From: Schmidtea polychroa | Lineage: Eukaryota | Direction of reading: 5' to 3' | Assembly: GCA_044892525.1 (NCBI GenBank) | Contig: CM097885.1 | Location: forward strand, 191,394,001-191,458,000 | Length of the DNA: 64,000 bases | Part shown: positions 2,420 through 64,000 of the stretch, one piece after another | How positions within the stretch are numbered: the stretch's first letter is position 1 | Layout of the letters: every line of letters starts with the position of its first letter | Position numbers and translations under genes: made by a program | The notes under the pieces: model-generated | The model's input: the letters and a program-made list of their open reading frames with translations, nothing else | The model's database searches: none | What the model was told of the DNA's origin: nothing

Positions 2420-3810
2420 GATAAATTTTTATTCCTTTTCGACGGAACTCGCATTATTGCTTCTTTTCCAATCAAAGCTCTTCCACCACACCCTAATCGT
2501 TGAAAAATGAAGTTCCTGTTGAGTTTGCTGCGCATTGCATATTTCATCGCCAGCATTTGGTTGTAAAATATCTGAGTGAACGCCTCCATAAATTAGATGA
2601 ATGTTTAAAGAGAAGTTTCATTTTTATTAGAGCGACTAATACTAACAGTTCAGGAACTAAGCAAAGAGAATTGAGACTTCATATCTTCTGAAGAATAAGT
2701 GCGTGCTCAGATGGGACTTTCACAAGATATCTTTTAAATCAAATGTTAGAAGTTTCTAAAATTCAATAAAAATTAGAAAATTTGAGTTTGCAAATGTGAA
2801 TAACTGCTAAGAAAGCTACTGACTGAATCTTCCATATGCTTTGAAAAAAATAAGATTTTCAATAAATGCGTGAGAAACAAAAATAGAGGTTGCTGTAATC
2901 TGAATTGGATTAGAAACATTAAGTTCTGCCACAATGTCACTCTACACGCTGTGATGGCTCATTCAAAGCTTCAGTAAACACGTCACCTTCAAGTTATTAT
3001 TAATAACCATCTCTAGATACATATTTACTCAAGCGCATTATTATGTACCATACAACTTTTATTGCTCACCGTTTCAGTGATTTAACCACTTTCCTCAGAC
3101 CTTCTCGCATGTAAATGAGTGACAACGCACCTAAGTTGACATGCAATATGGCCACAACCTCCAATAATATTGTTTGCAATTAATATAAATGCTAGATTAT
3201 ACGTTTTGATAGTTTTGTAAGTTATTAGCATTTGCTATGTCATTTTATCATTTCTTGCTTCAGTTGTCAAGGAAAAGCTGATAGAATAAAAAGAAATCAA
3301 AAATAAAATATTTCATTTGCTGTTATCCAAAATATTTCAACATAGAAATGGGTAAAATAAAATATCAAATATTTGTGTACTGACCAGTTAATAAGTAGTA
3401 TACAAATATGAAATTTGTTGAAAATTAATTTTTTTTGGAAAATCTTTTTCATTATTTTTATTAATTAGCAAAAAATAAAGTTGAGCATCCCAGCAGAAAT
3501 TTTTAAGGTTGTATTGCGCATCTTGCGGAATTTTATAACTTTGAAAATTCAATTGCAAAAATTTAGCAATCCGTTGGCCTATCATCTGGATATACTAGCA
3601 TACTCAAATTTGTTATTTCTTTATCATCAACACAAGTATCTTGTGAGAGATCTTTTTCAAAGTTAAAATGTTTAAGTCAAAAACATTTGGAGGCATTTAT
3701 GCTCATGGCGTGCGAAAAAGATATTCTAAATAACATTGACAATAGAGCAACTGTTATAATGAGAGAAAAAAAGAGAAATATTAAAAAAACTTGTTTAATT
3801 TTAATATTTA
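2420..3810 (+). repeat. Composite cassette block (Tc1 fragment, Buster-hAT fragment, unique repeat, hAT dimerisation-domain fragment)
   Basis: Shared with 62430-63430, 60306-61180 and, inverted, 24290-25290. Contains AAHCIFHRQHLVVK and TQVSCERSF remnants. Confidence 0.85.
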
Positions 3811-7500: not shown

Positions 7501-8459
7501 AGTAATGTAAAAGAAAAGTCAAATTCATTTGCTAAACGTGCGAATACACTACTTGAAGAGGAAAATTGTGAAATAATTGTCGAAGAACATATACCAGAAG
7601 AGAGATTTAGACGACGAAAGAGAATGCCCGACGAAATAACCGAAGATCATGAATTTCAAAAACCAATCGAAAAATATAAAATAAACACGTTTAACGTAAT
7701 TATGGATACCACAATAAATACTATAGAAAACCGTTTTAAAAATCATGGAAAATTATATGCAGACATGGCAATATTAGACCCTAAAAATTTTACCGACAAT
7801 AAATGTTCAGAAAACAGTTTAGAAGAGCTCAGTAAATTACTAGTAAAATATCATAAAACAGCTACAGCGTCAAATTTAAGGGAGGAATTAACTGATTTAA
7901 TGACAAAATGGGACGACTTTAAAATATCTATGCAAGATATATATAACATCGATGAATTAACTGATTCAGATTCAGAAATAATAAGTGAAGTGTGCCTCAA
8001 AAACAAAAAGAGTTGCGAAAATTGTATTTATTGCTGTTTTAATTTCTTGGCTAAATATAATTTATATAGCAAAGTATACAGCAATGTTTATTTTGCATAT
8101 AAATTTATTTTAACATTATCTTCGACGCAAGTAGCTTGTGAAAGTAGTTTTTCCAAATTAAAAATTATAAAATATAGACTCAGATCTTCCTTGTCACAAG
8201 ATAATTTGCAGTTTTTGATGCTTATGGCGATAGAGAAGGATATTTTGGTTAATTTAAATAATTATACAATAATAGATAAAATAAGAGAAAATGCTCCTGG
8301 TATTAGTAAATATTTAGGAATCTTTTGTTTATTTATTTTTTATTAAGTATGTATTTATATGTAATATTATATTAAAATGTTATTTTATATTATATTGTTT
8401 TTTTTAGGCCGGTACACTTGGGGTTTCCCGGGCCGCTCAAATTTGCCAGTCCGCTACCG
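4578..8459 (+). mobile_element. Decayed hAT DNA transposon (ZMYM1-like/Ac-type transposase)
   Basis: Left end CAGTGGCGGACTGG at 4578; degenerate right end CCAGTCCGCTACCG at 8446-8459. No TSD recognisable. Confidence 0.8.
5614..8346 (+). pseudogene. Fragmented hAT transposase
   Basis: Contains the TTF-type Zn finger (RRWLSYS...FCTMC), GKRGLALRAH, an RW motif and the C-terminal TQVACESSFSKLKIIKYRLRS dimerisation domain. Split by several stops and frameshifts. Confidence 0.88.
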
Positions 8460-10672
8460 TTGCCTTTAAATGAATAAGGGGAGAATATATCTACCCTTCA
8501 TTCACTGAGGCTTTTTATTTTCTGTAATATTCAGGCTGGAGTACTTGGAGCGCTTGCAACAAACATTTATTGACTTTTCACAGAGTCGCTGTTATAATAT
8601 TGATGCTTTGGATAGGTATGGTAATGCTTTGTAATACGTATAAATATAAATATATATCCATATTCTTATTGGAAAAGGGTATTGTGGTTCCCAATGGCTT
8701 TGTTGATATCCATTCATTATATATCTGTCTTGATTATTTGAGACCGAATCGATATCCTGATGTGATTTTAAACACATTTTGTATTCATTAATATTTCTCT
8801 GGCAAATTTGTGGAATGATCATCAGTTAGGGTATTGATGGGCTTCCTCAAGTAGGGTATTCTGGTTCTTCACTGATATCTTAAACGCATTTTGTATTGAG
8901 TTATATCTTGTAGAGTAGGCATGGCAAGATCATCAGTTCAGGTATTGATGAGTTCCATGACGTCGAGTAGAATATGTTATTTAGGCATCATCTTGGTCTC
9001 TAGAGAAAAGGTTGGAGTCGGAAGGAAATGAAAGGAGCCCTACATCCGCACTGACTATCTGTGCTGATTTTGTACAAGTGAAATGTTACAAAAAAAGACA
9101 GGCTACACTTGACTCATTTTTGCATTGAATTAAATTGTATTTACCTACCTATTTATTATTTTAATTAGGAAATTTGTAATTAATATGATAATTTATATTA
9201 CCTATATTAAATTTACAGTTTCAGAGTATATAAAATAAAATTATTGAAAAAAAATATACATTGTTTAATTTTATGTGTGTATTACTGGTTAATGTCCTTA
9301 GTTGCCAAAACCAAATAAATATTTCATTAAAATAAGGATAATTTAAAAACAATAGTAATTTCTATTATCTTCGAATCTCACTTCTTTTGATCTGATTTAT
9401 TTAGAAAATAAAAAATTTAAATGATAATGTCAATTTGATAAATCATAATTGAAAAAATAGGCAAAATGAATAAAGTCAATACAGAAATGCATCAAAATTT
9501 ATTAAAAAACAAAGATTTTATTCTGAGGATTTCTCAACTTCTTCAGCAACTGTTTCTGATTGTTCAACTTCTTCAACAGCTTCAGTTTCTTCAACTTCAG
9601 CAACTTGTTCGACTTCAGCAACAACTTCACAATGTTCGTTACACATGTTTAATAGAGATGAATTGCATAGAAATTTACTCGTATTTATACAGCTAAACAA
9701 TGCACACAAACTGATATTTGATTGGTCATTGCATCATGAATGAATGAAATATTTCATGAGTAATTTAATTGCATTATTACTGAAGCATGTTTGTAAATTT
9801 TATCAAAGTTGTAATAATTGAAACATTTGTTGTACAAGTAATATTTTTGATAGAATTTTGAAATTTGTTTTTCATCGTGCTATAATAAACAAATGGAAAT
9901 TCATTTTCTCTGTCGTTTGACCCCAATACGAATAATGTCAACGCATATATCATCATATTTATCATGTCCTCTAATGGTTCCTCTAATTTTAGTTAATTTT
10001 TTGTTTGTTGGGGATTTTTAATTAGTATTATAAATTATTATATTAAAATCATCTGTCATTCATCGTGGACAATAAATAAATTGGACAAAAAACGGTATGC
10101 TTTATTGTTATTAAATATTAATTAGTAAAAACAACCAGTTTATAGGTAGGTCTGTTAAAGGGGTGCCTTGAAATAATTAACGTAGGGAATTTATCCTAAT
10201 ATTTATAAGAGCCACATGGAAGTAATACGCTTCTACTTTAAATACCAATGTAAATCCTAAGCATATTCAAAAATGAAACACTTTAAACTATTTTACGATT
10301 GCGTTCGGAATTGCACATTTTCATATTAACATATAATAGTTGAAAGGTTATTAATGTTGTTTCAGTGGGTCATTTGCATTATTATCTGCATAAGAACATG
10401 AATTTTGTGTAGAATATGATATTGGAAATTGGCCTCTTTTTAAACGAATCCAATTTTAAAATTAGAACATTTACGAACAAAATGATTAAGGAAGGATAAG
10501 TTGATCATCACAAGAAATAAATATTAACAGGAAATTGAGGAGGTTGGCCTCCAAGTTTAAAATAAATATTACCAATAATTGAAAAAGTTTAAAATGTTGA
10601 TCAAATTTCATTTAACCTTTTAATTGCAAAATTTGTAAAATAAAATATCTAACTGACAATCCTTCATGTAAT

Positions 10673-13600
10673 CAGGGGCGCTCCAAGCGGGCGTGCAACG
10701 CGTGCGTGGCACGCAGGCGGCCGTTTGAAAGGCGGCAAATTAAAAAAATGCATTTGCAAAAACAACAATTTCATTTTGTAAAATTCATTTTTTCATTTTG
10801 TAAAAAAAAAAAAAGTTTTGTTACTGAACGCACACAGTTTGTGTAGTATCATTGAACGCACTCCATTAATTTTTATATATCTGTCTTGGCTTGTCATTGA
10901 CAAATACTATTACACTAAATAACTTTGACAAGTTGTCAAAGTCATTTAGTGTTTTAATTTTGGATTCAAAACAACATTAATATTTCCAGTTTTTAAATTT
11001 ATAAAAATCAATAAGATTTTTATTTTTAAAAAAAAATAGAGATATATAATATTAGATTAGAAAGCAGGATTGTATTATAGAATTTGGTAAGTATAATGCA
11101 ACTTTTTCAATATTTTTGTTAAACATAAGTGTTATGATGTACGTTAGATATTTTTTATTTGTATTATTTGCACCATTAGATATGACCGGAAGAAAAACAA
11201 AACGTTTATCTGGCGCACAATACAAAAAGCAGCGTTTAAATAAACTGAAATCAATGCAGAGTTTGAAGAATTCGCTTTCAAAATATTTTGAAAATACACC
11301 AACAGCGTCGTCAAGCACACCTATAGAAATAGAAAATAATGTTACCATATCTGTTGACGATAATAAAAGTTCTAGCGATAGCGATGAGAATGAATATGAA
11401 ATTTTTACAGAAATTCGGTCTGAAAATTCATCTGTTGGAAATTCATCTGACGAAAATTGTGAAGCAAATATAATATTGGACGATCCAGGTATGTGGGCAA
11501 ATAATATATCAAGTATAACCGCACGTAACCTTGTTGAAAGAGGACCGATTCAAATAAAAAATTTCGAATTTCCATTGTCAAGTGGGCGTAAATTTTCAAA
11601 GTATTATTTAAGACAATTGCCGAACGGAGAAGAAACACAACGCGAATGGCTTGTGTATTCAATTACTAAAAATTCTGTGTATTGTTTTTGCTGTAGGATA
11701 TTTGATTTCAGTGATAAAAGCAGTCTATCCGATTCATCGGGTTTTTCTGATTGGCAACATTTATCGTTAACTTTGTCTCGACATGAAAAAAGTCAGTTTC
11801 ATAATGAAAATATAAAAAAATGGATATTGTTAAATAAATCATTAAAAAATAATACTACAGTTGATAGTGCGAACCAAAGACTATTACAAGCCGAACGAAA
11901 GTATTGGTATGAAGTAATTCAACGAATAATATCTATTATTCAATATCTTTCTAGGCAATGCCTTGCCATAAGAGGAAAGTCAAATCAATTATATGCAAAT
12001 AACAATGGAAACTTTTTGAAAGCAGTAGAAATGGTTGCCAGATTTGACCCTATTATGCAAGAGCATGTACAACGGATTGAAAAGTCTCGAAACAATTTGA
12101 AATATATGCCTCATTATTTGGGGGATAAAATACAAAACGAAATTATCAATATTATTAGCACAAGTATTAAAAACGCTATATTAGATTTAATTAGAAAAGC
12201 AAAATATTTTTCAATTATATTAGATTGCACACCAGATGTTAGTCATACTGAGCAATTAACTATTGTAATAAGAATTGTGAATTTGGAATCAAAAAAAATT
12301 GAAATACGTGAACATTTTTTGGGTTTCTATCAAATAACAAATACTACCGGCGAGGGGTTAACCGAATTTGTTTCAAAAGAACTTTCAAATCTAAATTTAA
12401 ATATTCATAATATGCGTGGACAGGGATATGACAATGGTGCCAATATGCGAGGAAAGCATAATGGCTTACAAAAAAGAATTTTAAATATCAACCCGCGAGC
12501 ATTTTTTGTACCATGTTCTGCTCATAGCTTAAATTTAGTTGTTAATGATGCGGCACATATTTCACATGAAACAGTAACATTTTTTGATTTAGTACAAGAA
12601 ATATATGTAGTTTTTTCGGCGTCAACTAAAAGACGGGCGATAATAGTAAAATATTTACCGAATTTAAAATTAAAACCCCTGAGCGATACAAGGTGGTCAA
12701 GTAGAATTGATGCCATACAACCACTAAGGTATCATACTGAACAAATTTATAAATCTCTTTTTGAAATATCAAATGATCAATTGATTGACTTTAAAACCAG
12801 ACATGTGGCAAATTCTCTTTCACTAAAAATATCAAGTTATCGTTATTTATGTTCCATTGTTATTTGGCATGAAATTTTGATGAAAATTAATGTTGTTAGT
12901 CAAATATTACAGAACCCAAACACCGATATCAATAGAAGCGTTACCGCGTTAGATGATTTAATAGAGTTTTTAAAAATTGTCGTAATGATAATGGATTTGA
13001 AAAAATGCTTACATCAGCTAGTGAATTAGCCGAAAAATTACACGTAGAACCTAAATTTCAAGAAATTTCAAGTTTAAGAATAAGAAGAAAAACACCAAAT
13101 TTTGATTATGAAGGCAAGGATGAACCAATATTAGATCCAAAAACAAATTTTAAAATTAACTTTTATTTCTGCATTATCGACCAAGCATTAGTATCAATTA
13201 CAACAAGATTCGAAGCGTTAAAATCGTATAATGATATATTTGGATTTATGTATAATATTAAAGATATAACAGAAGAAATACTTTTGAAAAGCTGCAAAGA
13301 TTTACATTTGAAATTAACTGACGAACAAAGAAATGAGTCCGATATTAATGGAATTGATTTATTCAAAGAGATAAAAACTATAAAGATATTTTTAAAAGAA
13401 GAAGATATTAAACCTCAATCTATATTATTATATATTTTACAAAATGATCTTCAGGCAACATTCCCAAATATATTTATTGTGACCAGAATTCTATTAACAT
13501 TACCAATCTCAGTTGCAACAGGTGAAAGATCGTTTTCAAAATTGAAGATAATTAAAAATTATTTACGATCAACTATGCTCCAGGAACGTTTAAGTAATAT

Positions 13601-13969
13601 ATCAATAATTTCAATAGAACATGAAATCCTAGATAATTTAGATATGCATGACTTAATTTCACAATTTGCTTTGAACAAGGCAAGAAAAGTCTCTTTTGTA
13701 TGAGTAGTAAACTATTAATTTCATAAACTTTCTATTGTTTGTGTGTACTAAACTATAACTTTCCTAAACTTATCTGTTTTGTGATTAATAAACTATAATT
13801 TTCATAAACTATTGCATGTGATATGTGTGTTCTTCCGCAGTTTGTTTAATTTTTACTTTAATTAAATGTTATTTTTATTTTGGATTATAGAAACTTTTTT
13901 GCAGCAAGGATGAAGAGCGGCGTGAAATTATTTTGCACTCAAGCGGCCTAACAGCTCGGCGCGCCCCTG
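10673..13969 (+). mobile_element. Near-intact hAT transposon, 3297 bp, 8-bp TSD CATGTAAT
   Basis: TIRs CAGGGGCGCTCC / GGCGCGCCCCTG. TSD at 10665-10672 and 13970-13977. The empty site is visible at about 34171-34200. Confidence 0.96.
11182..13703 (+). CDS. hAT transposase of about 840 aa, split only by one -1 frameshift at 12967-12976
   Basis: ORFs 11116-13029 and 13005-13703 contain the TTF Zn finger, LDCTPDVSH, GQGYDNGANM, CSAHSLNL, TRWSSR and VATGERSFSKLKIIKNYLRS. The likely start is MTGRK at 11182. Confidence 0.9.
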
Positions 13970-15161
13970 CATGTAATCATCATTTATAGAAAGTTTCTAT
14001 ATAAAATACTTGCGGCCTTAATTTGATATATGCGGACGTTGAAAGGATTTGATGAAAATGTTTACGCTGTAATAATTATTTGCCATTTATAGTTATTATA
14101 GTTAAAACTAAATTTCGAATATTTGATAAAAAAATTATTTCATGCAAAACAAATGCTTCAGTAATAATGCAATTAAATTACTCATGAAATATTTCATTCA
14201 TTCATGATGCAATGACCAATCAAATATCAGTTTGTGTGCATTGTTTAGCTGTATAAATACGAGTAAATTTCTATGCAATTCATCTCTATTAAACATGTGT
14301 AACGAACATTGTGAAGTTGTTGCTGAAGTCGAACAAGTTGCTGAAGTTGAAGAAACTGAAGCTGTTGAAGAAGTCGAACAATCAGAAACAGTTGCTGAAG
14401 AAGAAGTTGAGAAATCATCAGAATAAAACCTTTGTTTTTTAATAAATTTTGATGCATTTCTATATTGACTTTCATCATTTTGCTTATATTTTCATTTCTG
14501 ATTTAAATTTAAATTTTTGTATTTTTTAAATAAATCAGAAATCACTATTATTTTTATGAAATATTAAGCAAATGTAATTATTTATTTTATTAATTTCTCA
14601 TTGAAATGGGATGCTTGAAATTATTTTGTGATTTAGTTGTCAGTGGATTTATAATTTAGTGGATTTATAATTTAGAAACCTGTAGATTTATTATTTACAA
14701 TTTTGAATCAAATATATTTAAAAAACTAATTATTTTTACAAAATCGAGATTTGTAATTTTTATGTTTAATTATCACAATAATATTTTGACGTTTTATGAA
14801 CCAAATTTTTCAATTTTATATAAATTAAATGTGGAAATTAGAAACTATAGCTGAAATGTATAAAAGAACATTCATAAAAATTCATCTAATTATTCATTAC
14901 AATAACCAATCAGAATCCATCCGAATGATCCAATCAAAATTGAAGACACTGAAGCTGTAAAAATATTCAAACAATCAGAAGTTGTTGAGGAATCATCAGA
15001 ATAAAATTTTGTTTTCTAATAAATTTGTATTTCTATATTGTCGTTTATGCTGATATTCAAAATTATTTTTTGACAATTGAAGATGTTAATTTTCTTTATT
15101 TTATATAGTTAACTAATCTGATGAATAGTATAGTTAAATAAAAATCTCCTTAAGGACAATA

Positions 15162-18745: not shown

Positions 18746-20184
18746 TGTAGGAGCTCTAGCTATTTCATGTTTTTAAAAGTCGTTACAATTAAGCAGTTCT
18801 AATTCGTATTCTGATTGGATCATGCGGATCGAATCTGATTGGTTCTTGTTATAATTCATTTATCGAGGTGAAATTTAATGAATGATTGCATAATAATTAA
18901 GTTCAATTTTTGTGTGCAAAAATATAATTTGATCTATTACTCATTATTTATCAGTAACTGTTAGTGAACGTTTGCGTCAACCGAAGACAATGAATATCAA
19001 GCGCTGCTTATCAAAAATGTATTTCCACAATTAACATTTCACAAAATATTAAAACTATTATTCATCAGATTAGTTAACTATACAAAATAGTGAAAATTAA
19101 CATCTTCAATGTCAAAATATAATTTTGAATATTAATATAAAAATACAAATTTATTAGAAAACAAAATTTTATTCTGATGATTCCTCAACATCTTCTAATT
19201 GTTTGAATATTATTGCAGCTTCAGTGTCTTCAACTTTGATTGGATCATTCGGATGGATTCTGATTGGTTATTGTAATGAATTATTAGATGAATTTTTATG
19301 AATGTTCTTTTATACATTTCAGCTATAGTTTCTAATTTCCACATTTAATTTATATAAAATTGAAAAATTTGGTTCATAAAACGTCAAAATATTATTGTGA
19401 TAATTAAACATAAAAATTAAAAATCTCGATTTTGTAAAAATAATTAGTTTTTTTAATATATTTGAATCAAACTTGTAAATAATAAATCTACAGGTTTCTA
19501 AATTATAAATCCACTGACAACTAAATCACAAAATAATTTCAAGCATCCCATTTCAATGAGAAATTAATAAAATAAATAATTACATTTGCTTAATATTTCA
19601 TAAAAATAATAGTGATTTCTGATTTATTTAAAAAATACAAAAATTTAAATTTAAATCAGAAATGAAAATATAGGCAAAATGATGAAAGTCAATATAGAAA
19701 TGCATCAAAATTTATTAAAAAACAAAGATTTTATTCTGATGATTTCTCAACTTCTTCTTCAGCAACTGTTTCTGATTGTTCGACTTCTTCAACATCTTCA
19801 GTTTTTTCAACTTCAGCAACTTGTTCGACTTCAGCAACAACTTCACAATGTTCGTTACACATGTTTAATAGAGATGAATTGCATAGAAAAATATCTCGTA
19901 TTTATACAGCTAAACAATGCACACAAACTGATATTTGATTGGTCATTGCATCATGAATGAATGAAATATTTCATGAGTAATTTAATTGCATTATATTACT
20001 GAAGCATTTGTTTTGCATGAAATAATTTTTTTTATCAAATATTCGAAATTTATAAACTATAAATGGCAAATAAGTTTTACAGCGTAAACATTTTAATCAA
20101 ATACTTTCAACGTCCGAATATATCGAATTAAGGCCGCAAGTCTTTTATATAGAAACCTTTTATATATGATGATTACATGTAGAA

Positions 20185-24289: not shown

Positions 24290-26780
24290 CAAAAAAAAAT
24301 TAATTTTCAACAAATTTCATATTTGTATACTACTTATTAACTGGTCAGTACACAAATATTTGATATTTTATTTTACCCATTTTTATGTTGAAATATTTTG
24401 GATAACAGCAAATGAAATATTTTATTTTTGATTTCTTTTTATTCTATCAGCTTTTCCTTGACAACTGAAGCAAGAAATGATAAAATGACATAGCAAATGC
24501 TAATAACTTACAAAACTATCAAAACGTATAATCTAGCATTTATATTAATTGCAAACAATATTATTGGAGGTTGTGGCCATATTGCATGTCAACTTAGGTG
24601 CGTTGTCACTCATTTACATGCGAGAAGGTCTGAGGAAAGTGGTGAAATCACTGAAACGGTGAGCAATAAAAGTTTTATGGTACATAATAATGCGCTTGAG
24701 TAAATGTATATCTAGAGATGGTTATTAATAATAACTTGAAGGTGACATGTTTACTGAAGCTTTGAATGAGCCATCACAGCGTGTAGAGTGACATTGTGGC
24801 AGAACTTAATGTTTCTAATCCAATTCAGATTACAGCAACCTCTATTTTTGTTTCTCACGCATTTATTGAAAATCTTATTTTTTTCAAAGCATATGGAAGA
24901 TCCGTAGGTTTCTTAGCAGTTATTCACATTTGCAAACTCAAATTTTCTAATTTTTATTGAATTTTAGAAACTTCTAACATTTGATTTAAAAAATATCTTG
25001 TGAAAGTCCCATCTGTGCACGCACTTATTCTTCAGAAGATATGAAGTCTCAATTCTCTTTGCTTAGTTCCTGAACTGTTAGTATTAGTCGCTCTAATAAA
25101 AGTAAAATTTCTCTTTAAACATTCATCTAATTTATGGAGGCGTTCACTCAGATATTTTACAACCAAATGCTGACGATGAAATATGCAATGCGCAGCAAAC
25201 TCGACAGGAACTTTATTTTTCAACGATTAGGGTGTGGTGGAAGAGCTTTGATTTGAAAAGAAGCAATAATGCGAGTTCCGTCTAAAAGGAATAAAAATTT
25301 ATCTATTTGTGCAGCGATGTCTGTTTCTGGGGAGTATTTCAAGGTTGTTACAAAAACATCATAAAACATGGTGAAATTTCGCGAGGTTTTATCGAGGTTT
25401 ATTGAGTTGCTTCACTCAAAAAATATTAAATCCGGAATTTTTATAATGGATAATGTAAGGTTTCATCATTGCAGAGAAGTTTCGTGTTTGATTAATAATA
25501 CGAATTTTAAATTACTTTTTCTACCATCCTATTCGCCATTTCTAAACCCGATAGAAAATTTGTTTTCCAAATGGAAAAGTACTGTGATGACAATGCGACC
25601 TGAAAATGAAGAACAACTGATACGATATGTAGAAGAATCAACTGATTTTTTTTCGTTTCACGATTTTCAGGGATATTGGAGGAATATGATGAGGTATATT
25701 TTTGAATTCTGACATTGTACAACGTAGCCAGTGTCCAATAGAGTATTTTTTTAGTCAGATTTAGTCAAATTGAAATATATTGAAGGATTTAATTATTCCC
25801 TTAATTATAACCTCAATGAAGAAATGATAAATTGACAATTTATTTAAAAATATTGACATTTTTGGGAACAAATGAACACATGAACAAATGGATATGAAGG
25901 GATGACAATTAATGAGATTATCCAATATCCTACAGAACAATATAACATAAATCAACAATTTCATTAGAAAGAAATATATCTACAATTTTTTAAAAATTCA
26001 ACATAATTTAGAGATGGCAAAATATTTCCGCCATTATTCAAACTGTGATTGGATCATGTGAATCGAATCTGATTGGTTCTTGTAATAATTTATTATTTGA
26101 TCGAATATTGTAATTAATAATTGTGATCAATCAAGTGAGTCATTTATCGAGATGAATTTTTACGATTGTTTGCATAATGATTAAGATCAATTTTTGTGTG
26201 CAAAAATATAATTTGATCTATTACTCATTAAGTATCAGTAACTGCTAGTGAACGTTTGCGACAACAAAAGACAATGAATATCAAGCGCTGCTTATCAAAA
26301 AAGTATTTTCACGCTTAACATTTCACAAAATATTAAAACTAACGAAAATTTATATAACTATAATCAGGGCTAGACTGGAAACACGTCGGAAAATATCGGT
26401 GACGTAGGCCCACAATATTAAATTTAAGAAAAAAAATATCAAAAAAGTACATTTGTAATTTATAAATATATTTATTATAATAATAAGTTTATTAATAATT
26501 GTAACAAAAATCAATTAAATAAATAATTAAATAAATATTATTAAAATTAAACAAGTTTTTTTAATATTTCTCTTTTTTCTCTCATTATATCAATTGCTCT
26601 ATTGTCAATGTTATTTAGAATATCTTTTTCGCACGCCATAAGCATAAATGCCTCCAAATATTTTTGACTTAAACATTTTAACTTTGAAAAAGATCTCTCA
26701 CAAGATACTTGTGTTGATGATAAACAAATTTGTACCTTAAAGATAAATTTGAGTATGCTAGTATATCCAGATGAAATTTT
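24290..26780 (-). repeat. Inverted copy of the composite cassette at about 60945-63430
   Basis: Near-identical reverse complement; the ORF track returns matching peptides (25761-25964 vs 61763-61966). Confidence 0.92.
25200..25750 (+). pseudogene. IS630-Tc1-mariner superfamily (DDE_3) transposase C-terminal fragment
   Basis: GIFIMDNVRFHH...FLPSYSPFLNPIENLFSKWK. A second copy lies at about 61990-62520 (-). Confidence 0.85.
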
Positions 26781-32329: not shown

Positions 32330-34880
32330 CTGACTATACTATTCATCAGTTTAGTTAAAATAGTGAAAATTAACATCTTCAATTGCCAAAAAATAATTTT
32401 AAATATCAGTTTAAACAATAATATAAAAATTTATTAGAAAACAAAAATATTTATTCTGATGATTCCTCAACATCTTCAGCTTGTTTAAATATTACCACAG
32501 CTTCAGTGCCTTCAACTTTGATTGGATCATTCGGATGGATTCTGATTGGATATTGTAATAAATTATTTGATGAATTTTTAAGAATGTTCTTTTATCCATT
32601 TCAGTCATAATTTCTGATTTCCACATTTAATTTACATAAAATTGAAAAATTTGGTTCATAAAACGTAAAAATATTATTGTGATAATTAAACATAAAAAAT
32701 ACCAAATCTAAATTTTGTAAAAATTACTTTATTTGATATATTTGAATCAAGTTTCTAAATTATAAATCCACTGACAACTAAATCACAAAGTAATTTCAAT
32801 TGGAATGAGAAATTAATTAAATAAATAATTACATTTTCTCAATATTTCATAAAAATAACGATAATTTAAAAACAAGTGATTTATATTCGAATCTCACTTC
32901 TTTTTATCTGATTTATTTAGAAAATAAAAAATTTGAATGATGTAAATTTGATAATTCATAATTGAAAAAATATGCAAAATGAATAAAGTCAATACAGAAA
33001 TGCATCAAAATATATTAAAAAAAGGTTTTATTCTCATGATTTCTCAACTTCTTCTTCAACAACTGTTTCTGATTGCTCGACTTCTTCAACAGCTTCAGTT
33101 TCTTCAACTTCAGCAACTTGTTCGACTTCAGCAACAACTTCACAATGTTCGTTACACATGTTTAATAGAGATGAATTGCATAGAAATTTACTCGTATTTA
33201 TACAGCTAAACAATGCACACAAACTGATATTTGATTGGTCATTGCATCATGAATGAATGAAATATTTCATGAGTAATTTAATTGCATTATTACTGAAGCA
33301 TGTTTGTAAATTTTATCAAAGTTGTAATAATTGAAACATTTGTTGTACAAGTAATATTTTTGATAGAATTTTGAAATTTGTTTTTCATCGTGCTATAATA
33401 AACAAATGGAAATTCATTTTCTCTGTCGTTTGACCCCAATACGAATAATGTCAACGCATATATCATCATATTTATCATGTCCTCTAATGGTTCCTCTAAT
33501 TTTAGTTAATTTTTTGTTTGTTGGGGATTTTTAATTAGTATTATAAATTATTATATTAAAATCATCTGTCATTCATCGTGGACAATAAATAAATTGGACA
33601 AAAAACGGTATGCTTTATTGTTATTAAATATTAATTAGTAAAAACAACCAGTTTATAGGTAGGTCTGTTAAAGGGGTGCCTTGAAATAATTAACGTAGGG
33701 AATTTATCCTAATATTTATAAGAGCCACATGGAAGTAATACGCTTCTACTTTAAATACCAATGTAAATCCTAAGCATATTCAAAAATGAAACACTTTAAA
33801 CTATTTTACGATTGCGTTCGGAATTGCACATTTTCATATTAACATATAATAGTTGAAAGGTTATTAATGTTGTTTCAGTGGGTCATTTGCATTATTATCT
33901 GCATAAGAACATGAATTTTGTGTAGAATATGATATTGGAAATTGGCCTCTTTTTAAACGAATCCAATTTTAAAATTAGAACATTTACGAACAAAATGATT
34001 AAGGAAGGATAAGTTGATCATCACAAGAAATAAATATTAACAGGAAATTGAGGAGGTTGGCCTCCAAGTTTAAAATAAATATTACCAATAATTGAAAAAG
34101 TTTAAAATGTTGATCAAATTTCATTTAACCTTTTAATTGCAAAATTTGTAAAATAAAATATCTAACTGACAATCCTTCATGTAATCATCATTTATAGAAA
34201 GTTTCTATATAAAAGACTTGCGGCCTTAATTCGATATATTCGGACGTTGAAAGGATTTGATTAAAATGTTTACAATGTAAAACTTATTTGCCATTTATAG
34301 TTTATAAATTTCGAATATTTGATAAAAAAAAATTATTTCATGCAAAACAAATGCTTCAGTAATATAATGCAATTAAATTACTCATGAAATATTTCATTCA
34401 TTCATGATGCAATGACCAATCAAATATCAGTTTGTGTGCATTGTTTAGCTGTATAAATACGAGTAAATTTCTATGCAATTCATCTCTATTAAACATGTGT
34501 AACGAACATTGTGAAGCTGTTGCTGAAGTCGAACAAGTTGCTGAAGTTGAAGAAACTGAAGCTGTTGAAGAAGTCAAACAATCAGAAACAGTTGCTGAAG
34601 AAGAAGTTGAGAAATCATCAGAATAAAACCTTTTTTTTAATAAATTTTGATGCATTTCTGTATTGACTTTATTCATTTTGCCTATTTTTTCATTTCTGAA
34701 TTTTCAAATTTACATTAAATTTTTTATTTTCTAAATAAATCAAATCAAAAGATAATAAAAATAACTATTGTTTTTAATTTATTTTTATTAAATATTAAGT
34801 AAATGTAATTATTTATTTTATTAATTTCTCATTGTAATGGAATTCTTGAAATAATATTGTGATTAACTTGTCAGTGGATA
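32330..34880. repeat. Uninterrupted copy of the foldback cassette (arms about 32880-33300 + and 34350-34740 -)
   Basis: About 32900-34185 is nearly identical to 9380-10672 and continues directly into sequence matching 13978 onward. Confidence 0.9.
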
Positions 34881-35974: not shown

Positions 35975-37008
35975 TTTCTATTTCTACTTTTCTATCTCAT
36001 TCGGCTATAGTCCTCATTTCTAGATGTTTTCTATAATTTCTTTTCAAAATTTTGTGCAGGGATGCGCCCTTATTTTTCTATTAATAAATGTTGCTAGGTA
36101 TTTTCCTTGATATTTATGAATATTTAACCTATCTCGCAAAAAATTTGAGCAGGGATCGGCCCTTATTTCCAAGTTAATCCACACTTCCCGTAATATTTAA
36201 ATTGTTCTTCAAAAAATTTGAGCAGGGATCTGCCTGTATTCTTAGTCCTAACCTATGTTTGACCGAAGGTACTTCCAGCGACGGACCCGTGGAGAAGCCT
36301 CCACATTTCGGCCCGAAATCAGCTGCGTGATTGAAAAGCCAGCATACCCACCAGTCTAAGCATTCCGAAGGTACCCCAAACCATGGTATGCTGGATCTCA
36401 ATTCCACGGTACTATCGTTCATAATCAATAAGCATAACAATCGAACCCAATAAAAATTATTATCCAAAACTTAAAAATTAAATGAAAATTAAACAATTAA
36501 ACAACTAAACTAAACTGATTATAAAATTTATTTTAGCTTAAAACATATAAAAATTTCATATAAAAATAAAATTACCCAACCCAATCCACGATGGCATGAA
36601 ATCGAGAACAAATTGAGAGCAAGTGTTTACCGTCAATGTAATGGTTACACTATCCGAAATGACCAGCTGTGGTGTTGAAAAAACTAGCTCCTTCAAATGA
36701 ATTTGTAATCAGTATTTATACTGATTTTGAATGCGCATTCATGCATTCTCTGCCACTCTATCCAATTAGAGTGCGAGAAATTTTGAATTAATTTTGTATA
36801 CATGCATGAGTGTGTGCAATTATTTATTTTTAATTTCATTAATTTAATTCATTAATTATTAATTTTTTATTAATTTTAATTTTATAAATTTTATAATTTA
36901 AATAATTTGAGTTATATTAATTTTTATTAATTTAAACACTTTTATTCTTTAAATTTAATAAGTTACATAACCATTTAATTCTATAAACTTTACAATTTAC
37001 ATAATGCT

Positions 37009-37129
37009 AACTGTTTCAACCAGTCAGAGGGGGATTGCCTCTGGACTGGCAGTTTTGGCTTTTTTCTATCGCGTCTGTGTGCGCGGTCTGGTTAGACCGA
37101 TTCTTGTTGGTGTGCGCACACAGACGCGA
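37009..37129. other. Two adjacent GC-rich stem-loops, one with a perfect 16-bp stem and an internal hairpin
   Basis: 37020-37049 pairs as CCAGTC-AGAGG/CCTCT-G-GACTGG. 37069-37084 TCGCGTCTGTGTGCGC pairs with 37114-37129, enclosing GGTCT-GGTT-AGACC. Confidence 0.85.
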
Positions 37130-37229
37130 GAAGTAGGTTTTATGGTTAAATTGTGAATTTTTATATAAATGGTTTTTTAGAAATTATTGATTCGATGGAT
37201 TGTTATAATTAAATTAGGTTTTAAATGGA

Positions 37230-37964
37230 ATGTTGTTTTACCGGATTAATTGGATTTCTTTGGTAGATTTGTTTAAAATTTGTTCTAAATTAAAATCTGT
37301 GGAAATTATGATGAATTTCATTCTCAGAATGTTCGGTTCTATTGGTTATTGCAATGCATGTGATAAAGTTATTCCAGCATTTGAATTGATAATGCGAGCG
37401 GGAAGTTTTGTGTATCATTTGGAATGTTTTGGTTGTCAAAAATGTAATCATAGAGGAGCTCATGGAATTATTGTTGTGGTTGATGTTACCGATCAAGATT
37501 CGTTTAACAATGTTAAAAATTGGCTTAATGAAATCGATAGATATGCAAAAGGAAAAGTTCCCGATAAAATGATTGAGACGAGTTCAGCTACGAGATTGTT
37601 TAATATTACTGAAAGTACCGGAGGTGTTATGATTGGAATGATCCCTGATTGTCGATCTCAAGTATGTCGTGCACGAATGGAAGCAGCTCGATTTAATTCT
37701 GAAATTGGAAATAAAATGACTTGTGAGATAAGATGTTTGTCTATGTTTGTCTATGTCTATGTTTATATTGATCAATTCAATTCCCAATCGGCTGAGAGGC
37801 GACCATTAGGATGTTCAATGATGGCATTATCTTCTAATCTTGAACTGGACAAAATGTTATTATTCAAAACTGATCGACGTGGCCCTGTAGAGGCGAACAA
37901 TAAAATTATCAATCGTTTTTTTGGACTTATTCAGCTAACTAATTTTATTATTTTGACGATTTAA
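37230..37964 (+). CDS. Chimeric 244-aa ORF: partial LIM domain plus Rab1 fragment plus proteasome alpha-6 fragment
   Basis: A continuous open frame containing three recognisable segments (next three features). Expression unknown. Confidence 0.7.
37328..37454 (+). pseudogene. LMO: LIM-only (LMO1/3, Beadex-like) second LIM domain fragment
   Basis: [43 protein letters not shown] keeps 6 of the 8 Zn ligands and the IPAFE-VMRA motif. It is preceded by the splice-acceptor-like TTCTCAG. Confidence 0.85.
37452..37547 (+). pseudogene. RAB1: Rab1/Ypt1 GTPase internal fragment
   Basis: [32 protein letters not shown] matches the Rab1 consensus [32 protein letters not shown]. No P-loop or NKxD. Confidence 0.92.
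37548..37880 (+). pseudogene. PSMA6: 20S proteasome subunit alpha type-6 internal fragment
   Basis: KVPDKM...[25 protein letters not shown] and Q.AE.RPLGCSM...FKTD match the alpha-6 motifs KVPDKL, DSRSQVQRARYEAA and QNAEMRPLGCCM. Confidence 0.85.
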
Positions 37965-38569
37965 TTTTTATATCGTTTAAATAATTTTCAAATAATTCTA
38001 TTTTACATTTTATTATTTTTCTATCGAAAGTTTTAAGTGTTGAATTTTTTTGTTAAATTTATTTATCTCTTTATTCTATTATACGGGGTTTTTTTGATTC
38101 TTAATGTGTGATGTAACTTATTTTATTTATTTTATATTAAACCTTGATCATAAATTTTTTCAACTTTGCGGTTTTTGTGTTAGGTATTTTCGATCGATTA
38201 AAACAAACTCTCAGTTCTCGGTTTCAGCCCAACAAAAGTAACAAAAGCGTATTACCTGATGACATATTAAATTTTACTATTCTCCACTAAAGTTAATTAA
38301 AATAAAAGTAAATCTCAAACAAAATATTGAATTTACAATGTCAACAGTTAATAAGTAATATACAAATATATTTGAAGGCGTAAAAACACTGACAGAAATA
38401 TTTACAGAAAAAATAAATTTCCTTATATTTTTATTTTCGCATCTCTAAATCCAAATTTGAAAGTTTCATCATAAGAATAATACACGTGTAATAAATGTTT
38501 CAATTATTACAACTTTGTCATGAAAATTAGAAAACAGATGCTATTAGCTTAAACCAATTAGATTACTTA

Positions 38570-38830
38570 TAAAATATTTCATTCATTCATTATGCAATGA
38601 CCAATCAATATCAGTTTGTATAAAAACGAGTAAATTTCAATGATATTCATCTATTTCAAACATGTGTAACGAACATTGTGAAGTTGTTGCTGAAGTCGAA
38701 CAAGCTGCTGAAGTTGAAGAAACTGAAGCTGTTGAAGAAGTCGAACAATCAGAAACAGTTGCTGAAGAAAAAGTTGAAGAATCATCAGAATAAAATTTTA
38801 TTTTTTAATAAATTTTGATGCATTTCTATA
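38570..38830. repeat. Further, more diverged copy of the E/V-rich arm
   Basis: Matches 14200-14470 with deletions. Confidence 0.85.
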
Positions 38831-39062
38831 TTGAAAAAGTTCTGAATAATTTCTTTTTAAAATACTATTTATTAATAATTGGTATTATTATTAATTGGTA
38901 TTTATTATTTAAGTTTACAGATTTTTTTTGTGCTACTAATCTTCCCTAAGTTTTCATATTATGAACATAGGTTAAATAAAAGCTTTTTCTGTACTTATCA
39001 CAGTTTTTTAACTATAAATAGTTTATTATTTCATTTTACACGATTTTCGGACGACTTGAAAC

Positions 39063-41752
39063 CAGGGCCGCCGCGTACGATTGTTCATATTGTGCGCCGC
39101 ACAAGGGCGCCGAGTGATAAAGGCGCCGTCAGGCGCCTCTTTCACTCGGCGCCACCTCACTAAATAAAAAAAATTAAAATTAAATATAAAAAAATTAAAT
39201 GATAAAGAAGAAAAAGTGACAAATATGGATTTATTAGAGAGATACTGGAAACGCGGGCGCAACGTATACCTTATTCTAACACGCTATGAAAGCGCGCTCG
39301 TGACTTCGTGCAATGCGATCGGTGTCGATCGCTCAACTTCGTTCGATAAAGGCGTCACCGTGACGCGCGGCATTTCACATTTACGTCTAGTCAAGACCAC
39401 CACTGCATTTCTCTTCTGCGAAATCAAATATTTATTGATTTTCATCAGGCATTCATTATAAAATTTCAACGTAAGTATAATTTACAATATTAAATAACTA
39501 ATTATATATTAAATAACAATATTAAATAATTACAATGTATAATAAATTTTAACTTAAAATCCTTAGATGTCTGGAATCGGAAAAAAATCAAAATTATCAG
39601 GCGCGCAAAATAAGAAAAATAGACTTCAGCGAGAAGACGCTCGACAAAAGCTATCAGGTTCTTTAGATAAATTCACTATTAAAACTATTAATCCTACTAC
39701 GACTGCAACGGAAGAAAATCAAGACCTGAATCTCGAAACACAAAGTTCTTCTGGTGTATCCACAAACTCTACAATAGAAAACGAATCGAAAGAAAGTAAT
39801 AAAACCGATTCCGATTCTGAAAAAATTGATTTTAATGATCCGGCTACTTGACCAAAACAAATTAATATAAAATTAAGAGATTGTTTAATAGAAAATGATC
39901 CTAAGCAATTAATTTTGAAAGACTTCCCAAAAAATGAGTCTGGACGTAAATTTTCTGATAATTATTATTATCGAACTTGATACAACACCAGACATAAGCC
40001 ATACTGAACAGTTAACCATTATCATAAGATTTGTTTATCACAATAAATCGAGAAATGTCGTGAGCATTTTTTAGGATTCCAAAGTGTAACTGACACAACC
40101 GGTGTAGGTTTATTCGAGTTCATCATTAACCATTTGAAATTAATGAACATTAATATATCAGATTTACGCGGACAGTCGTACGATAACGGAGCTAATATGC
40201 GTGGGAGACATAATGGACTTCAACAAAAAATTCTTGAAATAAATTCACGAGCTTCTTTCGTTCCATGCGCTGCTCATTCATTAAATTTGGTAGTGAACGA
40301 TGCAGCTAAAATTTCATTTGAGACGGTAAATTTTTTTAGTGTGATTCAAGAACTATATAATTATTTTTCAATTAGTGTGAAACGGTGGGATGTATTAAAA
40401 AAATACGTTAAAAACTTAACCCTAAAACCACTTTCTGCAACTAGATGGGAAAGTCGGATAGAAGCCCTGAAACCTCTGAAAATGTATATGTCAGAAATTT
40501 ATCAAAGCTCTATTAGATATCACTAATTACCACACAAAAGACATGGATTCTAGAGCTCAAGCAAATAATATAATTTCAAAAATTTGTTCTTTTAAATTTT
40601 TGTGTTCCGTCTCAATTTGGTATGATATATTGAATCTTGTCAATATTGTCAGCAAAATAATGCAAAAGCCCACATTCGATTTACAATTAGTAACAGAAAA
40701 TCTTAATTCAATTTTGAACAACTTAAAAAGTCTTAGAACTGATGATAAATTTGAAGAACTTGTGACGTCTGCAATGGCTAAAGCTAGAGAACTTGATATT
40801 GAGCCTGATTTCCCTAAAACTCGAAAGCGAAAAAAAAGGAAGTTATTCGATTACGAAGCATCAGATGATACAGTGAAGGATGCAAAACATGATTTTAAAA
40901 TTAACTTCTACTTCGCGATTCTGGACACCACTATATCGTCAATTTCAGAACGATTTCAACAATTGCAACAACACAACGAAGATTTTAAAATAATACACAA
41001 CATCAACCAACTAAAACAATGGGATAATGAGGATTTATTGAAACACTGCAAAGATTTGCATATAAAATTAACCAACGGTGCAAGCAATGAAGATATTGAT
41101 GGTATAGCTCTAAACGAAGAATTAAAAACCATTCAATTTTTTATAAAATCTGACTTGTCTCCTCACGAGGTTTTAAATTACATTTATAAAAATGCATTAA
41201 ATGAGATCTTCCCGAATATAACTATTGTATTACGCGTTTTTTAACATTACCTGTGTCTGTTGCTTCTGGAGAAAGAAGTTTCTCTAAGTTAAAACTAATT
41301 AAAAACTATTTACGGTCTACCATGAAAGAAGAACGATTAACGGACTTATCTATAATATCTATAGAAAGCGATATTTTGGATTCCATAGATATTAACGATC
41401 TCATAAAAATCTTTGTAGCTGCTAAAGCTAGAAGAGTAAATATGTAAAAAGTATTTTGATTTTTGAGTGATGAATAATTATAAAGTAATCTAAGTCTTAA
41501 TATATGTTTGAGACAAGCAAATTTTATTGATTGCTTAGATTTAGCATTATATATTGTATGTATATAACCCATGCCTGTATATTATGGTATTGTATAAGCT
41601 TTAATTATATTTTAAAATAAAAGTATTCATTGGAAATATTCTAATGATTAAATTCATAACAAGTCATAGTTTTTGACATGGGAGTTCAGTTCAGGGAAGG
41701 GCGCTGAAAAAAATCTGGCACAAAGGCGCCTCTTACCCACGCGGCGGCCCTG
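39063..41752 (+). mobile_element. Internally deleted hAT transposon, 2690 bp, perfect 14-bp TIRs, 8-bp TSD CTTGAAAC
   Basis: CAGGGCCGCCGCGT...ACGCGGCGGCCCTG; TSD at 39055-39062 and 41753-41760. Transposase fragments span 39567-41447 with a deletion junction near 39978. Confidence 0.95.
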
Positions 41753-60305: not shown

Positions 60306-63300
60306 TTATTGTAATTGTAAATTAAATGAATGTTTAAAGAGAAGTTTCACTTTTATTAGAGCGACTAATACTAACAGTTCAGGAACTAAGCAAAGAAAAT
60401 TGAGACTGCATATATCTTCTAAAAGAATAAGTGCGTGCTCAGATGGGACTTTCACCACTTTCCTCAGACCTTCTCGCATATAAATGAATGACAACGCACT
60501 TAAGTTGACATGCAATATGGCCACAACCTCCAATAATATTGTTTGCAATTAATATAAATGCTAGATTATACGTTTTGATAGTTTTGTAAGTTTTTTTTGC
60601 TATGTCATTTTATCATTTCTTGCTTCAGTTGTCAAGGAAAAGCTGATAGAATAAAAAGAAATCAAAAATAAAATATTTCATTTGCTGTTATCCAAAATAT
60701 TTCAACATAGAAATGGGTAAAATAAAATATCAAATATTTGTGTACTGACCAGTTAATAAGTAGTATACAAATATGAAATTTGTTGAAAATTAATTTTTTT
60801 TTGAAAATCTTTTTCATTATTTTTATTAATTAGCCAAAATTAAAGTTGAGCATACCAGCAGAAATTTTTAAGGTTGTATTGTGCATCTTGCGGAATTTTA
60901 TAACTTTGAAAATTCAATTGCAAAAATTTAGCATACCGTTGGCCTATCATCTGGATATACTAGCATACTCAAATTTGTTTTTAAGGTACAAATTTGTTAT
61001 TTCTTTATCATCAACACAAGTATCTTGTGAGAGATCTTTTTCAAAGTTAAAATGTTTAAGTCAAAAATATTTGGAGGCATTTATGCTTATGGCGTGCGAA
61101 AAAGATATTCTAAATAACATTGACAATAGAGCAATTGATATAATGAGAGAAAAAAGAGTAATGTTAAAAAAACTTGTTTAATTTTAATAATATTTATTTA
61201 ATTATTTATTTAATTGATTTTTGTTACAATTATTAATAAACTTATTATTATAATAAATATATTTATAAATTACAAATGTACTTTTTTGATATTTTTTTTC
61301 TTAAATTTAATATTGTGGGCCTACGTCACCGATATTTTCCGATGTGTTTCCAGTCTAGCCCTGATTATAGTTATATAAATTTTCGTTAGTTTTAATATTT
61401 TGTGAAATGTTAAGCGTGAAAATACTTTTTTGATAAGCAGCGCTTGATATTCATTGTCTTTTGTTGTCGCAAACGTTCACTAGCAGTTACTGATACTTAA
61501 TGAGTAATAGATCAAATCATATTTTTGCACACAAAAATTGATCTTAATCATTATGCAAACAATCATAAAAATTCATCTCGATAAATGACTCACTTGATTG
61601 ATCACAATTATTAATTACAACATTCGATCATATAATAAATTATTACAAGAACCAATCAGATTCGATTCACATGATCCAATCACAGTTTGAATAATGGCGG
61701 AAACATTTTGCCATCTCTAAATTATGTTGAATTTTTAAAAATTGTAGATATATTTCTTTCTAATGAAATTGTTGATTTATGTTATATTGTTCTGTAGGAT
61801 ATTGGATAATCTCATTAATTGTCATCCCTTCATATCCATTTGTTCATGTGTTCATTTGTTCCCAAAAATGTCAATATTTTTAAATAAATTGTCAATTTAT
61901 CATTTCTTCATTGAGGTTGTAATTAAGGGAATAATTAAATCCTTCAATATATTTCAATTTGACTAAATCTGACCTAAAAAATACTCTATTGAACACTGGC
62001 TACGTTGTACAATGACAGAATTTAGAAATATACCTCGTCATATTCCTCCAATATCCCTGAAAATTGTGCAACGTAAAAAAATCAGTTGATTCTTCTACAT
62101 ATCGTATCAGTTGTTCTTCATTTTCAGGTCGCATTGTCATCACAGTACTTTTTCATTTGGAAAACAAATTTTCTATCGGGTTCAGAAATGGCGAAGAGGA
62201 TGGTAGAAAAAGTAATTTAAAATTCGTATTATTAATCAAACACGAAACTTCTCTGCAATGATGAAACCTTACATTATCCTTTATAAAAATTCCGGATTTA
62301 ATATTTTTTGAGTGAAGCAACTCAATAAACCTCATAAAACCTCGCGAAATTTCACCATGTTTTATGATGTTTTTGTAACAACCTTGAAATACTCCCCAGA
62401 AACAGACATCGCTGCACAAATAGATAAATTTTTATTCCTTTTCGACGGAACTCGCATCATTGCTTCTTTTCCAATCAAAGCTCTTCCACCACACCCTAAT
62501 CGTTGAAAAAATAAAGTTCCTGTCGAGTTTGCTGCGCATTGCATATTTCATCGTCAGCATTAGGTTGTAAAATATCTGAGTGAACGCCTCCATAAATTAG
62601 ATGAATGTTTAAAGAGAAGTTTCATTTTTATTAGAGCGACTAATACTAACAGTTCAGGAACTAAGCAAAGAGAATTGAGACTTCATATCTTCTAAAGGAA
62701 TAAGTGCGTGCACAGATGGGACTTTCACAAGATATTTTTTAAATCAAATGTTAGAAGTTTCTAAAATTCAATAAAAATTAGAAAATTTGAGTTTGCAAAT
62801 GTGAATAACTGCTAAGAAAGTTACTGACTGAATCTTCCATATGCTTTGAAAAAAATAAGATTTTCAATAAATGCGTGAGAAACAAAAATAGAGGTTGCTG
62901 TAATCTGAATTGGATTAGAAACATTAAGTTCTGCCACAATGTCACTCTACACGCTGTGATGGCTCATTCAAAGCTTCAGTAAACATGTCACCTTCAAGTT
63001 ATTATTAATAACCATCTCTAGATTTACATTTACTCAAGCGCATTATTATGTACCATACAACTTTTATTGCTCACCGTTTCAGTGATTTAACCACTTTCCT
63101 CAGACCTTCTCGCATGTAAATGAGTGACAACGCACCTAAGTTGACATGCAATATGGCCACAACCTCCAATAATATTGTTTGCAATTAATATAAATGCTAG
63201 ATTATACGTTTTGATAGTTTTGTAAGTTATTAGCATTTGCTATGTCATTTTATCATTTCTTGCTTCAGTTGTCAAGGAAAAGCTGATAGAATAAAAAGAA

Positions 63301-64000
63301 ATCAAAAATAAAATATTTCATTTGCTGTTATCCAAAATATTTCAACATAGAAATGGGTAAAATAAAATATCAAATATTTGTGTACTGACCAGTTAATAAG
63401 TAGTATACAAATATAAAATTTCTTGAAAATTAATTTTTTTTTGGAAAAACAGTATTTTAATTATTACCTCTGGTTTTAAATTCATAAAAACCACTCGATA
63501 TACCTTTTCCAATATTTTATTACTGAGAATAACTCATCACCTACTTGCCCAATAGCCATCGAATTGATACTAAAGGAAATAAAAGTCTACAGCTCATGCA
63601 ATTATTACGTATGGTATAAAGTCGATTTAAAGGATTACCTGATAAGTTCACTAAGCATCTACAATGGCGGACAAAAGTTTACAGCAATACGTATTTTTGA
63701 TGAAAATAAATTATTTATAAATTAATTACAATTAGTATTTAATTAGCAAATGTTTGTGATGCAACCTACTCTAAATATAGAATTTAGAAAAAACAATTGC
63801 AGCTAATCTAAGTGTGATTTTTCCTTGCTGTTTTTATTATTTATATTTTGTTGTTTCTGCTCATTGATCGAAAACGCAAACTTTAAGGTCTAAAATAATG
63901 ATCTTACAGAGTGAAAAATATACAGAGGGGCAAGTAGCATCGAGATTAGAAGTGCACTTATCAATTGCCCATCGTGCAGTTTCGAGATTTAATTATCTTT
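60306..64000 (+). repeat. Head-to-tail copies of the composite TE-fragment cassette
   Basis: The block at 60306-60830 recurs at about 62590-63430. In between lie a hAT fragment and terminus (to about 61365), the AT-rich repeat and the Tc1 fragment (about 61990-62520, -). Confidence 0.85.

Follow-up and report, generated by a model that had tools for sequence, protein, structure and literature searches.

Retroviruses acquire host sequence by transduction, in which read-through transcription, packaging and recombination during reverse transcription join spliced host exons to the element. Helitrons, Pack-MULEs and Pack-CACTA elements capture genes at the DNA level; introns are usually kept in the captured pieces, and such elements are bounded by inverted repeats or by TC...CTRR ends. 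A third route, LTR-mediated retroposition, has been described in animals, including joints that show microsimilarity (Tan et al. 2016, Genome Res, PMC5131818). In that study, some retrocopies drew on at least two parent genes, and products were frequently in frame and transcribed together with the LTR (PMC5131818). In maize, the non-autonomous LTR element Bs1 has picked up parts of host genes in three separate transductions, and these make up a single hybrid ORF (Jin and Bennetzen 1994; Elrouby and Bureau 2001, 2010; in PMC13317346). Here we describe a locus of Schmidtea polychroa for which LTR-mediated retroposition and Bs1 appear to be the closest published parallels. It lies in a 64-kb stretch of genomic DNA, referred to below as the window, and comprises a 244-codon ORF (37230-37964, + strand, from a mechanical ORF listing) with pieces of three host genes. 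In our judgement this ORF is probably a passenger in a 922-bp solo LTR, a member of a non-autonomous LTR family whose LTRs carry mosaics of host scraps copied from RNA.

When the ORF was compared with PDB chains using phmmer, residues 26-79 matched LMO4/LMO2 (E = 1.7e-11), residues 72-121 matched Rab1A/Rab1B/Ypt1 (E = 3e-13) and residues 107-206/218 matched PSMA6 (E = 5e-17). Pfam gave LIM at 41-75, Ras at 73-111 and Proteasome at 107-218, with all three matches exceeding their gathering scores. A preliminary description, made from the sequence alone, had proposed that an LMO LIM domain, Rab1 and PSMA6 run together in one open frame of 244 codons, and each of the three segments did find its parent by both methods. 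The limits given there for the segments proved right to within a few bases (37328-37453, 37454-37547 and 37548-~37895), and the Arg codon said to be common to the LIM and Rab pieces does span their junction, at 37452-37454. All three pieces keep their native frame; the remaining two frames of the captured block contain 25 and 10 stops. The ORF lies in DNA of 30% GC.

Neither end of the ORF belongs to the captured block. The first 33 codons come from an AT-rich stretch (37141-37327, + strand) for which no homology was found and which ends in ...ttctcAG just 5' of the LMO piece. From the preceding stop to that point (37218-37327), 36 codons are open, an event with a probability of ∼0.04 given the base composition. 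At the other end, the frame stays open through the 3' end of the insertion at 37933 and reaches a stop 29-31 nt farther on. Start and stop both fall in non-homologous AT-rich sequence and, as the former lies within the insertion and the latter past its end, the two ORF ends are accidental. The exact 244-residue product is not on record in public protein collections. Word-based searches and an exhaustive search of representatives identified a single related chimera in public protein sets, P0008; among the 1.84 billion representatives covered by the exhaustive search, no other similar protein was seen.

The LMO piece (37328-37453, + strand) is exactly one conserved 126-nt exon. This could be seen by alignment to L004, the genomic locus of one mispredicted LMO protein, in which the exon occupies 1515-1640 and has the form cag|A...CACAG|gt. 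In full, its borders read ...ttgcag|ATTGTTTGG...AACCACAG|gtctgt, with 126 nt between them and phase 2 at entry and exit. Similarity between the window and L004 covers the 126 nt from 37328 to 37453 and ceases at both exon borders. The same two points, immediately ahead of LFG and immediately behind CNHR, are where many mispredicted LMO proteins from the exhaustive search break off. The piece encodes the end of LIM1, the first zinc finger of LIM2 and the start of the second finger, and is ∼70% identical to its best real homologue. It covers only positions 1-35 of the 58-position LIM profile in Pfam; being a single exon, it does not contain the two complete LIM domains, with two zinc fingers each, of an LMO protein. 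In the window, ...ttctcAG|A marks the 5' border of the exon, and the last exon bases, CATAG, run straight into A GGA GCT CAT GGA, the GAHG of Rab1. Because this joint lies at the exact donor end of the exon, it points to splicing, as judged from the alignment, rather than to random breakage or template switching.

The Rab1 piece (GAHGIIVV...EIDRYA; 37454-37547, + strand) corresponds to residues ∼83-113 of Rab1A, based on the PDB and Pfam matches, and is 76-88% identical to Rab1/Ypt1 proteins. It includes only positions 68-106 of the 162 in the Ras profile. The P-loop, switch I, switch II and NKxD are absent from it, and hence it is not a complete G domain.

The PSMA6 piece (37548-37895, + strand) is intron-free and decayed, and is colinear with PSMA6 residues ∼55-160. 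Its best PSMA6 hits are flatworm-like. Aligned to residues 55-159 of PSMA6 from the flatworm Macrostomum, it shows 46% identity over a colinear path and passes unbroken through the Macrostomum intron position at residue 123/124. The ends of the piece fall within exons of the Macrostomum gene and not at exon ends. Judged on the gene structure of Macrostomum rather than that of the host, the PSMA6 piece would be of RNA origin. Exon-precise LMO edges and an intron-free PSMA6 piece together point to pieces derived from RNA, through an RNA intermediate and reverse transcription. Only positions 21-127 of the 189-position Proteasome profile are covered and there is no Proteasome_A_N match in Pfam; the piece has neither the N-terminal alpha-subunit motif nor a full proteasome fold. 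Tandem Repeats Finder identified a short tandem duplication within it (ATGTTTGTCT / TGTCTA; 37733-37766, + strand), which adds five codons and appears as a five-residue gap against PSMA6 and as a 15-nt insertion against the sibling copy described next.

The related chimera P0008 is encoded by L001, an 826-nt ENA contig from an independent metagenome assembly (ERZ2272692). At 257-763 of L001, a piece of SNF8 (ESCRT-II) continues in frame into the derived PSMA6 piece that is also seen in the window. Positions 597-787 are 88% identical at the DNA level to 37546-37736 of the window, and derived residues are shared. Beyond the PSMA6 piece the two copies have no similarity: the upstream 300 nt of L001 scored 31 against the 5' part of the LTR, which is not significant relative to shuffles (24 ± 3.5, maximum 36). 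The 5' partner of the PSMA6 piece is variable, being Rab1 in the window and SNF8 in L001. PSMA6 homology appears to start a few codons farther upstream in L001 (CVATQ...), which suggests that in the window the Rab1 piece took the place of the first part of an older PSMA6 piece. A 23-mer taken from this region had no exact match in metagenome contigs or viral contigs when PSMA6 sequence of the window was searched for, and a peptide-pattern scan of metagenomes returned no relative of the chimera. The SNF8::PSMA6 chimera also indicates that the sample behind L001 contains the same retroelement family, or its host.

Comparison of the two copies shows that the PSMA6 piece is drifting neutrally. Its dN/dS between the window and L001 is 0.94 (NG86), the differences are spread 9/7/8 over the three codon positions, the PSMA6 part of L001 has an in-frame TAA stop, and the window copy bears the insertion made by the tandem repeat.

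Ends of the form TG..CA together with a duplication of 4-6 bp are the mark of an LTR integrase. To our knowledge, Helitrons make no target-site duplication. That the chimera is carried by an insertion is well supported. The insertion is 922 bp long (37012-37933, + strand), starts with TGTTTCAACC and ends with GGACTTATTCA, and is flanked by a perfect 6-bp duplication, GCTAAC, found on the left at 37006-37011 and on the right at 37934-37939 (gctaac|TGTTTC...TTATTCA|gctaac). Its termini, TGTTTC from 37012 and TATTCA up to 37933, are of the TG...CA type, and the duplication is of the length expected for an LTR retrotransposon. When the AT-rich flanks were shuffled, 38% of the shuffles had some 6-bp duplication adjoining TG..CA, whereas only 0.8% had one with at least three G/C; it is thus only the G/C content of GCTAAC that makes the duplication significant. 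GC content is 35% inside the insertion versus 20% for the flanking DNA, and it changes abruptly at each end, from 2-14% to ∼50% at 37000 and back to 14-20% after 37933. Given the TG..CA ends and the 6-bp duplication, we read the insertion as a solo LTR, an assignment drawn from its termini and the duplication. The window lacks a second LTR, a primer-binding site, a polypurine tract and gag, and neither gag nor pol was found nearby. It also contains no second copy of the insertion in its 64 kb and no paralogous empty site, and public collections yielded no other copy sharing the LTR ends. The ORFs at 40134-41244 were considered as gag and rejected; 39567-41450 is a decayed hAT transposase. At neither end of the insertion is there an A or T run of 8 or more, i.e. 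the poly-A tail of a LINE-mediated processed retrocopy is lacking. The insertion site itself (36820-37005) has a GC content of 2-14% and consists of short repeats in tandem, their periods ranging from 9 to 34 nt, and AT-rich sequence related to this array resumes after the insertion.

Other elements could be discerned within the LTR. A pair of GC-rich hairpins occupies its 5' end (37020-37130, + strand), and the predicted fold of 37000-37150, which holds them, has an energy of -62.5 kcal/mol compared to a shuffle mean of -41.7 (z = -5.2). These hairpins may represent a further capture, of a small RNA, or may serve a regulatory role in the LTR. The spacer between them, AGUUUUGG, resembles an Sm-binding site. 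A spliced-leader or snRNA origin was considered for the hairpins and found no support, with no match to them in Rfam or tRNA scans. A motif scan picked out a candidate TATA-like motif, TATATAA (37162-37168, + strand), and a candidate AATAAA (37899-37904, + strand) 30 nt before the LTR end.

How might three host genes have come to lie in one LTR? We envisage that scraps of host RNA were copied in during reverse transcription of the element, by LTR-mediated retroposition or transduction, with the reverse transcriptase or a read-through spliced transcript carrying host sequence into the part of the element from which both LTRs are made. Capture was probably serial, with pieces joining on the 5' side and each trimming the start of the previous one. 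Identity to homologues is graded, from 46% for PSMA6 through ∼70% for LMO to 76-88% for Rab1, and this decay, along with the shorter PSMA6 start in the window than in L001, suggests that PSMA6 was captured first, Rab1 second and the LMO exon last. PSMA6 would come first because it is the most decayed piece and also occurs in copies with other partners. Since the LMO::Rab1 joint falls exactly at the 3' end of the exon, it most likely arose when the LMO exon donor was spliced to an AG inside the Rab1 scrap. Codons for Tyr-Tyr-Arg can read ..tattatAG|A, and under such nested capture, copies with longer Rab1 pieces would read ..TATTATAG|A.. at the point where LMO is joined, and copies with the LMO exon would make up a young subgroup. 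The Rab1::PSMA6 joint (37545-37550), on the other hand, looks like a template switch at 2-3 bases, with CA or CAA as the microhomology. Both the splicing step and the template-switch step are presumed from the form of the joints. The full element would later have been reduced to a single LTR through LTR-LTR recombination. The mosaic itself looks like neutral cargo and not a new gene, and presumably has no function.

One feature of the locus, its openness, could be taken to mean that the mosaic is translated in the active element, with the LTR frame continuing into Gag and selection keeping it open even though residues drift. The ORF runs open past the 3' end of the LTR at 37933; each of the three joints (LMO::Rab1, Rab1::PSMA6, and SNF8::PSMA6 in L001) preserves the frame; and the 36 non-homologous codons upstream are also open, with P ∼0.04. 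In addition, RNA-type runs contain 11-29% of the 31-mers of the captured block, which shows only that this copy or its siblings occur in RNA assemblies. The in-frame joints and open upstream codons do exceed the openness expected under simple neutrality. However, the first reading of the stretch and the protein search both favoured open copies, and this ascertainment explains much of the excess. There is no amino-acid constraint between the copies, as seen from the dN/dS and from the stop in the sibling; the domains are truncated, none being foldable like its parent; and the partners are swapped from copy to copy. We therefore regard translation of the mosaic as unlikely, and we hold the same low expectation for its fuller form, in which the family serially splices host exons into its LTR and the mosaic is kept open as a leader or N-terminal extension of Gag. 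The suggestion in the preliminary description that the unbroken in-frame junctions reflect recency or selection finds no support in the neutral divergence of the PSMA6 piece or in the stop in L001.

A different vehicle, namely DNA-level capture by a Helitron or a Pack-type DNA transposon, had been put forward in the same description. The window is rich in DNA transposons (hAT, pogo/Tc5, mariner-like and a foldback element), and the splice-acceptor-like ...ttctcAG just before the LMO exon could be intron DNA. Concatenated host fragments within a transposon, with the possibility of chimeric ORFs, are likewise a feature that this locus has in common with Helitron, Pack-MULE and Pack-CACTA captures. 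But the retained introns, inverted repeats and TC...CTRR ends of those elements are all missing here. Alignment of the insertion ends to each other gave a terminal inverted repeat score of 6.0 versus a shuffle mean of 6.2, and a repeat search gave no arms. Helitron ends (5'-TC, CTRR-3' and a hairpin near the end) were found on neither strand; the two strands of the insertion start with TG and end with TTCA or AACA, and the flanking bases are C and G. Instead, the 6-bp duplication and TG..CA ends carry the signature of an LTR integrase, the LMO donor joins Rab1 without an intron, and the PSMA6 piece is free of introns. A DNA-level origin is accordingly very improbable. What survives of the earlier proposal is the broader point, since a transposon-borne, in-frame capture of three conserved host genes is just what the insertion with TG..CA ends and GCTAAC duplications contains; the Helitron or Pack-type vehicle has to be given up.

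We give equally little credence to the idea that the captured pieces have become a host chimeric gene or exon under selection. It would account for 244 open codons in 30% GC DNA, flanked by a TATA-like motif upstream and an AATAAA near the end, and some RNA-run contigs share words with the ORF. Against it, the PSMA6 piece diverges neutrally from its counterpart in the sibling, where a stop interrupts the frame, all three domains are incomplete, and both the start and the stop of the ORF lie in non-homologous AT-rich sequence, with the stop outside the insertion. Apart from P0008, nothing among the 1.84 billion representatives resembles the product. The new chimeric gene envisaged in the preliminary description is thus not borne out by three truncated domains, an ORF that ends beyond the insertion and a sibling interrupted by a stop. 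Finally, although at most about half of the locus's 31-mers occur in any one run, an assembly artefact that joined unrelated reads is the least credible explanation of all, given the clean ends, the target duplication and the independent ENA assembly L001, in which the same derived PSMA6 piece is attached to a foreign partner.

Other features of the window are recorded here as observations in their own right. A decayed hAT element at 39000-41750 has stops in its transposase, which comprises a DUF4371-like part and the C-terminal SGERSFSKLKLIKN motif; a 22-nt GGCGCC-rich palindrome occurs at 39106-39153, and a related 18-mer at 41724-41741. Further hAT relics are present at 5587-8346 and 11056-13703, a pogo/Tc5 relic at 499-1615 (- strand), and mariner-like scraps at 25365-25709 and 62156-62431. 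A unit of ∼280 bp occurs at least six times, in both orientations (9442-9740, 14201-14502, 19655-19957, 32955-33253, 34401-34703 and 38617-38815). It encodes a small acidic ORF rich in Glu and Val (MCNEHCEVVAEVEQ...), and the opposite strand is open too (LLQQLFLIV...). Two of the copies form an inverted pair with 98% identity (33017-33290 and 34364-34637). This unit could belong to a repeat or represent a small gene family. Nuclear RNase P RNA was matched at 2884-3163 and 62889-63168, both on the - strand, with scores of 32.5 and 32.4 bits, just over the gathering score. The two matches are full length and 60 kb apart. Repeats of 25-26 nt lie near them, at 3385-3409 and 63390-63415, and others are at 24319-24343, 38345-38370 and 60750-60774; because such repeats accompany both matches, they suggest a repeated unit or segmental duplication rather than two independent RNase P genes.

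Returning to the reading of the locus as RNA-copied host scraps in a solo LTR, its relationship to described systems can be specified. As in LTR-mediated retroposition, pieces of host mRNA lie inside LTR-retrotransposon sequence, with short microsimilarity at a joint. Unlike in that system, the mosaic here would lie within the LTR itself and be propagated in a repeat family with changing 5' partners, and one of the pieces has exact exon bounds, which implicates splicing as well as template switching. Bs1 provides the likeness of an LTR element with partial host genes fused into one hybrid ORF. Its captures are in the internal region, and its ORF has been reported to be expressed and is possibly functional, whereas the pieces described here lie in the putative LTR and evolve neutrally. 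Retroviral transduction would explain an exon-precise joint like that between LMO and Rab1. It differs in that the pieces here are short scraps, with no complete coding unit of the oncogene kind, and in that the mechanism at this locus is one that we infer.

These comparisons bear on how such loci should be read. A long open "fusion" of three genes is, on the interpretation we favour, the cargo of a mobile element, and a tempting false positive is thereby removed. The locus would also represent a clean case of RNA-mediated exon shuffling by an LTR element, in which the exon-edged LMO piece indicates that splicing, beside template switching, may supply host sequence to LTRs. Were the mosaic after all translated as a leader, the LTR would be a site at which host exons are repeatedly recruited into a retroelement protein.
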